Assembly (NCBI GenBank): GCA_950097015.1
Contig: CATNEN010000010.1
Location: 3,100,001 to 3,164,000, forward strand
Direction: 5' to 3'
Length of the DNA stretch: 64,000 nt
DNA from: Macrostomum hystrix
Lineage: Eukaryota; Animalia; Platyhelminthes
The stretch's first letter is position 1; every line of letters begins with the position of its first letter. The notes below the pieces were generated by a model. The model saw only the letters and a program-made list of their open reading frames with translations. It was not told the DNA's origin and did no database searches. Positions 11,350 to 20,984 of the stretch are shown here, in pieces. A program made the translations under genes and the position numbers.

Positions 11350-12150
11350 ATGTCTGCAACTTTAAAGTTTCCGCTGCTGCTGCCGCTGCCGCTGCTGCTG
11401 CTGCCGCTTCTGCTGCTGACTGCGGAGCTGCGCCATGTCCCCGCTGAGAAAATCTGCGGCTGGGGCGCATCAAGTGAGACCACACCGTATGCCGTGATTG
11501 ACAGAAAGTGCGATCAAAGCCACGACTCGATGTACAACCAGGACCAAGACCCAGATGAGAATAGAGAACGGGTCTGTTACGACTATTTCTCTGAAGTCAA
11601 CTTGACGACCGCGTTCGGCCTGCCCGCAGCGCTGCCCGCTAAGCGCCTGCAGTCGGAGTGCCGATGCAACCGGAGCGCCATCAAGAAAATGGCCTCCGAG
11701 CTGCTGCTGGACTGCCGGAAGGCCCGCCTGCCTGCTTCATTTTTTGCTGCTGTGGGCAACGGTACGAAGCTGGAGCTGAGAACTGAGCTCTTTGATGTCG
11801 GCTGCGTGACTCTGCACAATCGATCGGCACCGTCGCCGCCGGAGCGCCTGACGGCCGCGGACCTGCAGAGCATCAACGCCATGCTGGGCTGCGGCAGCTA
11901 TCTTTACCAGCAGTTCAGCTGCAACAGCAAGTTCAGCAAGCTCCAGTCGCAGCCGAACTTCGTTATCAACGCCGATGACGAACGGCTGCCGCGGCTGATG
12001 CCGGATGTCCGCTGTCCGTGTCCAGAACAGGAGCCAGTCCAGATGCCCATCTGGGTGCTCAAGACCGTGGACTACGGCAAATTGGAGCTTGGCTTCGCGA
12101 GGCTCGGAGTGTCCTGCGCCGTCCCAGCCAATCGCAGCGGCTCTGGCTGA
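11350..12150 (+). CDS. Secreted IL-17-family cystine-knot protein, intronless, apparently with two tandem IL-17-like domains (upstream in-frame ATG at 11317)
   Basis: Hydrophobic signal peptide after MSATLK. The C-terminal INADDERLPRLMPDVRCPC...EPVQMPIWVLK...RLGVSCAV matches the IL-17 pattern (D-x-N-R-x-P-x3-E-A-x-C-x-C...P-V-x4-V-L...V-x-V-G-C). A similar module RLQSECRC...KLELRTELFDVGCVT lies upstream. Confidence 0.65.
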   Translation: MSATLKFPLLLPLPLLLLPLLLLTAELRHVPAEKICGWGASSETTPYAVIDRKCDQSHDSMYNQDQDPDENRERVCYDYFSEVNLTTAFGLPAALPAKRLQSECRCNRSAIKKMASELLLDCRKARLPASFFAAVGNGTKLELRTELFDVGCVTLHNRSAPSPPERLTAADLQSINAMLGCGSYLYQQFSCNSKFSKLQSQPNFVINADDERLPRLMPDVRCPCPEQEPVQMPIWVLKTVDYGKLELGFARLGVSCAVPANRSGSG

Positions 12151-12446
12151 CCAGCTACAATTGTTAACCCCCCAGCAGCCATAGACAATACAAAACTTTA
12201 TTTTCAATATTACGAGCTAGCTTTCATATCCAGAGTGAAAATAAAAGCAAAAATATACCTTTTTGCAATCTAGTTTCCCAAAACTGCAATCAATTTTGCC
12301 CACGGAGAGAATTGACTTGTATATTTCTAATATCTTGGCTCAACCTGCCCATTCATTGCCATATAGTAACAAAACCACTTTGCCTACTATATGTGTTTTT
12401 TAATTATTTCTTTTTTAGAACAGCTTTTCTAGAGGTCACTTCACAA

Positions 12447-12630
12447 CTACTCTATCCCCAGCTGTAGAGTGCCGGCCAATCAGAATGGACCGGTCCGGGC
12501 CAGACACCAACCACCCCACCATCTCTACCCCGAGCTCTAGAGTTCCGGCCAATCAGAATGGACCGGTCCAGGCCAGACACCAACCACCCCGCCAACTCTA
12601 CCCCGAGCTCTGGAGTTGCGGCCAATAAGA
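12447..12630 (+). repeat. 73-bp tandem repeat (~2.5 copies), each unit carrying a GGCCAAT(CAG) CCAAT box
   Basis: GGCCAAT at 12474, 12547 and 12620 (73-bp spacing); units 1 and 2 are almost identical. Confidence 0.8.
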
Positions 12631-12678
12631 ATGCGATATGGGCTAACTATTTTTCTTTGGCAAACATTCATTTGCGGC

Positions 12679-12850
12679 GCAGCCGAGGAGAGAATTGGCT
12701 TGTGGGCTTGTCGTGCAATTTATGCCATCGAGGGGCAAACTCCAAGCAACATGCAGTGATAGTGTATATCGCCTGATGATAATAAAGTCAGGGCGGATGG
12801 ACACTCCTCTGTTAGTGTGTGACTCCGTACGGTATCTGTGTGCGTGTGTG
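12679..12850 (+). other. Dispersed structured element, copy 2 (homologous to 5840-5990)
   Basis: AGTGTATATCGCCTGAT-loop-GTCAGGGCGGATGGACACT hairpin; shares CAGCCG-GGAGAG, GGCTTGTCGTG-AATTT and GAGG-CTCCAAG blocks with copy 1. Confidence 0.7.
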
Positions 12851-13234
12851 CTCAGTTGTCAGCGGAATAGGCTTAAATCGAATGTCACTTTCACGCACTC
12901 TATTGCTGTTTCAGTTATTTAGTTTGAATTATTTTATTTTTTCTTATTTTTTATTATTCATAATTTTTATTTGCGCAGTTTATTTCAGTCCGCTACAGCT
13001 ACCAAACCCAGGGTAGGACACCGACCCCGGTGATTAGGCGCAGTACGAATTCGTGTATAGGGGTGTATGAAATACACTAGCTCTTAAGGAAAAATCTGAC
13101 CTTCAGTCAGAACCGCTGACGGCTTGATTATTGTTTCAAAATACACAATTTGAGTTTCGTACGCTTGCGTTGCTTGTCAGGGGGGGCAATTCTCCCTTTG
13201 GTAGCTCTACTGTTAAGATTTCGTCCCTCTACAC

Positions 13235-19060: not shown

Positions 19061-19642
19061 TTCTTTATTCCTCGGCCAACAGGCCACAGCCCACATTTAG
19101 ACACGAAGTAGGGGCAAAATCTGAGCACATCTTGGCGAAACTTCGAACGCCTCCTCATCTCATTGTGATTCGCTTTCAGTCCAATTGCTCAATAATTAGG
19201 GATCCGAATTTGTTGACCATAAACCAGCGCATTGTGAACAGACAGGTGCACAAGAATTTGAGAGTTTCTTTCCATTAGCTAGCTATGATAGTATGTGCGA
19301 GTATTGTCCCACTGACTCGCTCTAATTAGCCAAGATCTTGATAAAATACGCGTCCCAGCCAGGACCCGGATGCAAGTGGGGGGCTGTTGAGCCCCATTGT
19401 GCCGATTGTAAACACTGGGAAGCAGACTGAACTATTCACTTTAGAAATTGGAGCTGAACTTCTTGAACGGGGAAAAATTCCCACAAACAAAGCACGAGTC
19501 GGTGGGCTTGATATTGTTAAAAATAAAAGCTAGTCAGAGGCCCTACACTCATTGTCAGTATGGTTCTTTGCATGCCAATACGCACAGACAGGATAATGCA
19601 TTTACAAATGCACACCTAACGATGCTGGCGAACCTAACGAAG

Positions 19643-19940
19643 ATAGATAGATAGATAGATAGATAGATAGATAGATAGATAGATAGATAGATAGATAGAT
19701 AGATAGATAGATAGATAGATAGATAGATAGATAGATAGATAGATAGATAGATAGATAGATAGATAGATAGATAGATAGATAGATAGATAGATAGATAGAT
19801 AGATAGATAGATAGATAGATAGATAGATAGATAGATAGATAGATAGATAGATAGATAGATAGATAGATAGATAGATAGATAGATAGATAGATAGATAGAT
19901 AGATAGATAGATAGATAGATAGATGATAGATAGATAGATG
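19643..19940. repeat. (GATA)n microsatellite
   Basis: About 70 perfect copies. Confidence 0.98.
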
Positions 19941-20365
19941 ACGACAAGTTGTGCTGAAGGAGCCAAGGTGCTGTTAATTCATTTCCTTTACTTTTCCTGA
20001 TAGATGATTGTTGCACAAGTGAAATTCTGAAACTTTGTTCGCACAGTTTACAAAGCCCACTGCGCGAGCTGAGTTTGCGGTGTTTTGTGGCGGCTGTGCC
20101 GATTCGCATGTTTTATCTGTCATCTGGCTCGCTATCACTTGATAACTGCTTGTTTGTCTAAAGAAATATTTATCTGCATCTCCTAGCAGCGGGCCCCGCT
20201 AAACCAGCAATCAGTTCCATCGCGCACAGAGCACAGAAACGAGAGTCACTCTTCGCTTCCTGCTTCCCTGGTGACCCCACATGACACAGCCCTGGATTCT
20301 GAAACCGGAGCGACCGATACTGGAAACTGTGCGGGTCGGAATCTTGGCTTTCAAGAAGAATCGCT

Positions 20366-20875
20366 CCAAGCCACAAGAAGAATCAGCCCAAAGAGAATCG
20401 GCCCAAGGAGAATCAGCCCAATGTGAATCGCCCCGAAGAGAATCGCCCCAAGGAAAATAGCTCTAAGCCAAGGGAGAATCGCCCCAAGGAGAGTTGCCCA
20501 AATGAGAATCGGCCCAGGGCGAGTTGCCCAAATGAGAATCGCCCCAAGGAGAGTTGCCCAAATGAGAATCGGCCCAAGGCGAGTTGCCCCAAGGAGAATC
20601 GGCCTAAAGAGAATCGGCCCTAGGAGAATCGGCCCAACTAGAGTTGCCCCAAGGGGAATCGCACCAAGGAGAATCGTACCAAGGAGAATCGTCCCACGAA
20701 TCGCTCGAATGAGAATCGCTCCAAGCCCTAAAGAAAATCGGCACCAAGGAGAGACGCAACTAGTGGAACCGCTCCAATTAGAAGAATCGCTCGAAGAAAA
20801 GGAGAATCGCCCCAAGGAGAATCGCCCCAAGGAGAATCGCACCAAGGAGAATCGCACCAAGGAGAATCTCTCTAA
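20366..20875. repeat. Degenerate 15-bp minisatellite (GGAGAATCGCCCCAA)
   Basis: Degenerate tandem units lying directly after a GTGAGT donor on the minus strand, so probably intronic. Confidence 0.85.
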
Positions 20876-20921
20876 AGAGAGTCGCAATTTCGAAAGTTAA
20901 GATTGCTCCCCACAAACTCAC

Positions 20922-20984
20922 GCTGCAGTCGTTCTCTGAAGTTGCCAGACAGCAGAAGGCAGTCAACAGCAGCAGAGTCAGCAT
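20922..20984 (-). CDS. Signal-peptide exon (MLTLLLLTAFCCLATSENDCS), probable first coding exon of the receptor gene; alternative ATG at 21041
   Basis: Hydrophobic leader ending at AGC|GTGAGT (phase 0). Candidate linking exons near 20345-20250 and 20158-19990 are open but were not confidently resolved. Confidence 0.45.

Follow-up and report, generated by a model that had tools for sequence, protein, structure and literature searches.

Three sequence motifs have been given for the interleukin-17 (IL-17) cytokines (Pfam family PF06083; PMC4517768), and invertebrate members have been assigned to the cystine-knot types T1A, T1B and T1C, the last of which lacks the cysteine pair 3/6 (PMC11087794). 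These cytokines normally act as dimers of one-module chains, and their receptors are represented by the SEFIR domain (PF08357) together with fibronectin type III (fnIII)-like ectodomain families (PF16556/PF16578). TIR domains (PF01582, PF13676), which occur in Toll/IL-1 receptors and in stand-alone proteins, carry a box 1 (YDVFISY), a box 2 (RDxxPG) and a box 3 (FW) (PMC7075850), and are placed with SEFIR in the STIR superfamily. Platyhelminthes are not mentioned in the comparative IL-17 surveys PMC4517768, PMC8353272 and PMC11087794, a literature search found no paper joining flatworms or planarians with SEFIR or IL-17, and Toll-like receptors are absent from Platyhelminthes, Macrostomum lignano included (PMC8609888). 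Here we describe two expressed, linked flatworm genes, for a putative IL-17-type ligand and a single-pass receptor, found in a 64,000-nucleotide stretch of Macrostomum hystrix DNA (GenBank assembly GCA_950097015.1, contig CATNEN010000010.1, positions 3,100,001 to 3,164,000 of the forward strand). This whole stretch is referred to below as the window, and all coordinates are those of the window.

The two genes lie tail to tail, the ligand on the plus strand and the receptor on the minus strand, with 2,828 nt between the ligand stop (12150) and the receptor stop (14979), in agreement with the convergent gene about 2.8 kb away that the original prediction had described. Transcripts of both were present in the same four small public RNA runs, which belong to one study. 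Receptor and ligand genes of the IL-17 system have not usually been described next to each other. The reading that we favour, tentatively and at slightly below an even chance, is that a divergent IL-17-type ligand is encoded here beside a STIR-like receptor as an expressed linked pair. The components of the pair are as follows:

11350–12150, plus strand: ligand coding sequence, a single open reading frame (ORF) of 266 codons plus stop, with an alternative ATG at 11317 (reading frame and RNA words)
11575–11814, plus strand: ligand module 1, residues 76–155, with Cys 76, 104, 106, 122 and 152
11890–12126, plus strand: ligand module 2, residues 181–259, with Cys 181, 191, 222, 224 and 256
14813–14978, minus strand: receptor 3′ untranslated region, end approximate (RNA contigs)
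14979–15707, minus strand: receptor last exon (exon 4), 729 nt including the stop (RNA contigs)
15810–15896, minus strand: receptor exon 3, 87 nt, 29 residues, phase 0/0, both junctions confirmed (RNA contigs)
15982–16550, minus strand: receptor main ectodomain exon (exon 2), 569 nt, 189 full codons, 10 Cys, both junctions confirmed
16703–16771, minus strand: receptor mini-exon, 22 codons plus 1 nt, donor 16703 confirmed, acceptor 16772/16771 inferred
16818–19060: 21-bp minisatellite of 107 copies, making up most of the putative 4.15-kb first receptor intron
20922–20984, minus strand: candidate signal-peptide exon MLTLLLLTAFCCLATSENDCS with a GTGAGT donor in phase 0; its ORF also permits a start at 21041

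The ligand frame was open throughout from 11317 to 12150 on the plus strand, and it is in the sense of this unbroken frame alone that the gene is called single-exon, or intronless. Four RNA runs contained 60–64% of the 31-mers sampled from 11300–12200, and because these runs are indeed RNA (their contigs lack the receptor introns and join its exons at GT..AG), the ligand can be taken to be expressed. The predicted product opens with a Leu/Pro-rich, signal-like segment (residues 1–24, MSATLKFPLLLPLPLLLLPLLLLTA) and continues into a mature part that is rich in cysteines and bears N-glycosylation sites, an arrangement expected of a secreted precursor and in line with the secreted gene originally proposed at 11350–12150. 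It contains 12 cysteines (residues 36, 54, 76, 104, 106, 122, 152, 181, 191, 222, 224 and 256) and five N-x-S/T sites, and no dibasic site was found between its two halves. Modules 1 and 2 resemble each other, chiefly in their final strands (BLASTP E 0.006), and both end in ...KLEL...V(G/S)C...NRS. As a separate observation, residues 35–84 (11452–11601, plus strand; ICGWGASSETTPYAVIDRKCDQSHDSMY) weakly resemble the part of secreted phospholipase A2 (PLA2) that holds the calcium loop and the active site, in the pattern CGxG..TP..DR.C..HD..Y, with a match to 2not_A at E 0.79, and a PDB sequence search with the ligand gave nothing beyond this stretch; neither the CC nor the final signature Cys is present, and the likeness is probably a matter of chance or a degenerate relic.

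Pfam IL17 (PF06083) was the sole family match of the ligand, at 15.8 bits (E 0.019) with the precursor, compared with 16.4 bits (E 0.012) for the mature protein. The match appeared only when both modules were included and was strongest over residues 94–153, within module 1; since neither half matched alone, the score combines the weak signals of both modules. IL-17 motif 1 (PMC4517768) agreed at 8 of its 16 defined positions with NFVINADDERLPRLMPDVRCP (residues 203–223, module 2), a level that 8 of 5,000 shuffled ligand sequences attained and that was unique among 127,876 six-frame windows drawn from the whole stretch. The nearest language-model clusters were IL17, NGF and Spaetzle, all of them cystine-knot cytokines, at a similarity of 0.84. 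Among the likenesses to IL-17 cytokines are the apparently secreted nature of the ligand, the pattern I-N-x-D-x-x-R-x-P ... R-C-x-C and a C-terminal ...V-G/S-C strand. Both modules have a C-x-C upstream and a single cysteine in the last strand, with positions 3 and 6 not occupied by cysteine, and by cysteine spacing alone module 1 is compatible with type T1C (pairs 1/4 and 2/5; PMC11087794). Unlike the known cytokines, which are dimers of one-module chains, the ligand would carry both modules in one chain, and it has an extra N-terminal segment of about 50 residues. We consider the ligand to be probably of IL-17 type.

The receptor gene model was examined with RNA contigs aligned to 14450–16817. 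All three junctions of the original prediction were found in spliced contigs: 15810/15707 and 15982/15896 in 4/4 RNA runs, and 16703/16550 in two. They read CT..AC on the plus strand, that is GT..AG on the minus strand, and intron depth was zero. Exons 2, 3 and 4 were bridged by single contigs, so that the ORFs 15961–16488 and 14979–15674 are parts of one gene; their assignment to separate genes, which would have undone the spliced model, is thereby ruled out. All proposed exon borders carry AG/GT with compatible phases, and only a single open frame runs through each of 16550–15982, 15896–15810 and 15707–14979. Downstream, contigs extended to 14813–14877, and depth was zero in 14687–14765. An alternative coding candidate, the opposite-strand 241-residue ORF at 14971–15696 (plus strand), was rejected since the RNA contigs carry minus-strand splice signals; its open frame is a by-product of coding sequence rich in GC and in CTG/CAG.

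At the 5′ end, the acceptor of the mini-exon was placed at 16772/16771 because an AG occurs there and contigs end at 16769. The mini-exon frame is open only back to a stop codon at 16777–16779 and contains no in-frame ATG; an upstream coding exon is thus needed for a signal peptide. The candidate at 20922–20984, with its ATG, hydrophobic core and phase-0 donor, may be the exon used: it ranked first for hydrophobicity and donor quality among all ATG-to-GT candidates in the 9 kb upstream. The reach of the gene in that direction is bounded by RPL35A at 23706–23924. The possibility that the mini-exon region is a duplicate of the signal-peptide exon was rejected, as blastn found no similarity between them. 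The spliced contigs ended at 16769, and one other RNA contig continued without a splice from 16740 past 16817 into the 21-bp satellite; either the intron is retained in it or the receptor mRNA has an alternative 5′ end, and an assembly-graph branch at the acceptor would look like the contig pattern seen at 16770.

Spliced in this way, the gene encodes the three parts that had been foreseen, namely a cysteine-rich ectodomain, one membrane-spanning stretch and a cytoplasmic domain. The ectodomain is about 290 residues long with 14 cysteines. The last exon contributes its 55 juxtamembrane residues, then a hydrophobic stretch LTLPLISVLLLLLLLLLLRLL (~15471–15542), the tail of 161 residues (14982–15464) and the stop codon (14979–14981); with the candidate signal-peptide exon in front, this is the layout of a type-I single-pass protein. 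The layout is shared with IL-17 receptors, as are an ectodomain of the size of two fnIII-like domains and a cytoplasmic domain of about 160 residues, predicted to be alpha/beta, that starts a few residues past the membrane; the tail differs from theirs in being short and without a C-terminal extension. Between the RNA contigs and the window, 4/4 coding differences in the receptor were non-synonymous (15070, 15571, 15631 and 16251; S>L, P>L, S>Y and A>T), a tiny sample that fits relaxed or diversifying selection.

Whether the tail belongs to the STIR superfamily was approached by searching the receptor exon by exon. All 25 of the language-model neighbours of the tail that carried a family label were TIR_2/TIR clusters (25/25, similarity 0.91–0.92), and the recognition score was 3215. 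Strands (E) and helices (H) are predicted to follow one another as E-H-E-E-H-H-E-E-H, and the domain begins directly after the membrane and is as large as a STIR domain. Further likenesses to TIR domains are that the neighbours have the same length as the tail, that strands and helices follow a beta-alpha order and that a PG stands in the loop after strand B: of box 2 only this PG is kept (...LSQLAPG...), and PLLLIAAS takes the place of box 1. Because TIR proteins that are short, stand-alone and of equal length are favoured in the neighbour search, SEFIR and TIR are not separable by it. Compared with Toll/IL-1 receptors, the ectodomain differs in having neither leucine-rich repeats nor recognisable Ig domains. 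From the language-model neighbourhood, the beta/alpha alternation, the position and the size, we consider the chances that the tail has a STIR-superfamily (TIR/SEFIR) fold to be about even.

Several results weigh against the favoured reading, beginning with the fact that neither protein received a family assignment at a curated threshold. The ligand stays under the Pfam IL17 gathering score of 24 bits (15.8–16.4 bits), its single modules scored nothing in Pfam at E ≤ 10, and a language-model similarity of 0.84, being below 0.9, counts as a lead only. The canonical C-x4-C ... C-x-C knot cysteines (2/5, 3/6) occur in neither module, module 2 lacks an equivalent of Cys 4 and the single-sequence AlphaFold model was unusable (predicted local distance difference test, pLDDT, 37.0). 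No relatives of the ligand were found by word-index protein search, metagenome locus scan or exact-product look-ups. The ‘IL-17 motifs’ claimed for it have weak though consistent support in the sub-threshold Pfam match, motif 1 at 8/16 and the cytokine neighbours; motifs 2 and 3 (PMC4517768) were not above chance.

For the receptor, no Pfam family was found at E ≤ 10 with any exon, or with the tail by itself, SEFIR PF08357 and TIR included, and the IL-17 receptor fnIII-like families (PF16556/PF16578/PF15037) were absent from a Pfam scan of exon 2 and of the ectodomain portion of exon 4; the receptor differs from IL-17 receptors in this lack of any recognisable likeness in sequence to SEFIR or to their ectodomain families. 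The tail has none of TIR box 1, the RD of box 2 or the FW of box 3 (motifs of PMC7075850), and these absences, together with the missing Pfam match, set it apart from described TIR domains. An exhaustive HMMER search with the tail against 1.84 billion protein representatives found no true relative; the sole match (P0001, E 5e-4) was rejected as chance, being to a bacterial fn3-repeat protein with a score summed over four repeats. PADLOC gave no match with the tail, a PDB sequence search with it returned nothing, word-index protein searches with the tail and with ectodomain exon 2 were blank, and a metagenome locus scan for the receptor found no relatives. The single-sequence AlphaFold model of the tail was also unusable (pLDDT 35.8), and Foldseek on that model gave no meaningful match. 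As to the language model itself, the tail shares 139 features with its neighbours, where true family members usually share at least 170, and one third of shuffled proteins likewise gain ten concordant matches. The description of the tail as SEFIR-like was accordingly not borne out, since Pfam, PADLOC, PDB, HMMER and Foldseek yielded neither SEFIR nor TIR and the neighbours that the language model did supply were of the TIR family.

The two genes could instead be unrelated neighbours, the receptor being a lineage-specific orphan single-pass membrane protein with a Leu/Arg/Ala-rich tail that is not STIR and its adjacency to a secreted cysteine-rich protein being incidental. In favour of this explanation, which we regard as unlikely, no evidence from sequence or fold assigns the receptor to a family, the language-model neighbourhood is the sole positive evidence whereas ten concordant matches are also obtained by a third of shuffled proteins, and the four non-synonymous differences could mean weak constraint. 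However, a recognition score of 3215 with a top match of 0.92 is uncommon for shuffled sequences, and the topology, the domain size and the order of strands and helices all fit a STIR receptor. Doubt may also be directed at the ligand. It is very improbable, in our estimate, that it is not a cytokine at all and that its IL-17 signals are due to chance in some other secreted cysteine-rich protein, for instance a degenerate PLA2-like or a structural one. The sub-threshold Pfam score, with neither module scoring by itself, the incomplete knot cysteines and the weak likeness of residues 35–84 to the PLA2 calcium loop and active-site region (E 0.79) would agree with such a protein, but that likeness covers 50 residues only and misses the CC and the final signature Cys, and three independent weak signals (Pfam, language model and motif 1) indicate IL-17 or cystine-knot cytokines.

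A different kind of pair could be formed by a neurotrophin- or Spaetzle-like cystine-knot ligand and a receptor with a true TIR tail, standing outside the IL-17/IL-17 receptor lineage and following a Toll/IL-1 receptor-like logic without leucine-rich repeats. NGF and Spaetzle are named as often as IL17 by the clusters nearest to the ligand, the neighbours of the tail are TIR_2/TIR and never SEFIR, and the PG after the second predicted strand stands in the place of TIR box 2; moreover, flatworms lack Toll-like receptors (PMC8609888), so another type of TIR receptor could take their role. Against this, the only Pfam match of the ligand is IL17 and not NGF or Spaetzle, the ligand matches the IL-17-specific motif 1, and boxes 1 and 3 are absent from the tail, while the absence of SEFIR neighbours is biased by the short stand-alone TIR proteins that dominate the size class searched. 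We consider such a pair improbable.

Returning to the favoured reading of an IL-17-type ligand beside a STIR-like receptor, the ligand would be secreted as a single chain in which two very divergent cystine-knot modules of IL-17 type stand in tandem, and the receptor would be a type-I single-pass protein whose 161-residue alpha/beta tail most likely belongs, though highly diverged, to the TIR/SEFIR (STIR) superfamily. The two-module ligand may mimic an IL-17 dimer within one chain and bridge receptor ectodomains, whereupon the clustered STIR-like tails could recruit an adaptor via homotypic contacts. Of the ligand–receptor cassette put forward by the original prediction, the linkage and the gene models were correct, while co-evolution and binding, like the folds and the signalling, are things that we infer.

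Sequence comparison revealed a further trace of the receptor gene within the window:

10305–10600, plus strand: decayed inverted copy of part of the receptor last exon (matches 15041–15344)

This dead exon copy is 296 nt long and differs by about 4 substitutions (~1.4% divergence), an insertion of 4 nt that breaks the frame and a deletion of 21 nt. The ligand ATG follows approximately 750 nt downstream of it, and its 5′ side is cut by a 1.4-kb (GTCT)n array. An inverted copy of a receptor exon upstream of the ligand points to local duplication; the fragment would be what is left of a second receptor copy, though it could possibly be the product of an assembly join at the (GTCT)n microsatellite. 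Apart from this fragment, tblastn found no more paralogues within the window. A wider reading, which we offer as a speculative possibility well short of an even chance, is that flatworms, for which no IL-17 system has been described, possess a family of physically linked, co-duplicating cytokine–receptor cassettes in which a two-module IL-17-type ligand, as a single chain with its dimer built in, lies beside its own single-pass receptor. The STIR-type tail of each receptor would then have diverged past sequence recognition, and the present locus would retain the remnant of a second receptor copy.

The ligand–receptor pair is situated at the margin of a minus-strand housekeeping block that extends from RPL35A to a BTB protein and includes the following exons:

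23706–23924, minus strand: RPL35A exon
26299–27117, minus strand: ORC3 exon
34811–35551, minus strand: VPS51 exon
38260–38718, minus strand: gelsolin exon
41740–42273, minus strand: mitochondrial carrier exon
49562–50296, minus strand: MFS transporter exon
55206–56027, minus strand: BTB protein exon

Minisatellites crowd the window between 1152 and 59126, with 31 arrays scoring at least 200, periods of 4–112 bp and several arrays longer than 1 kb. They occupy introns and intergenic DNA, and some yield very long spurious ORFs, e.g. 7485–10850 and 16544–19111. An Rfam scan of the window gave no match.

Should the folds fail confirmation, the locus would amount simply to an expressed pair of lineage-specific genes. 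If they are confirmed, an IL-17-type ligand and a STIR receptor in Macrostomum, a flatworm model amenable to RNA interference and transgenesis, would provide a testable entry into flatworm cytokine signalling. Given that such cytokines normally act as dimers, two modules in a single chain would, if true, be an unusual arrangement, and the close linkage of ligand and receptor would permit their co-evolution to be studied directly.

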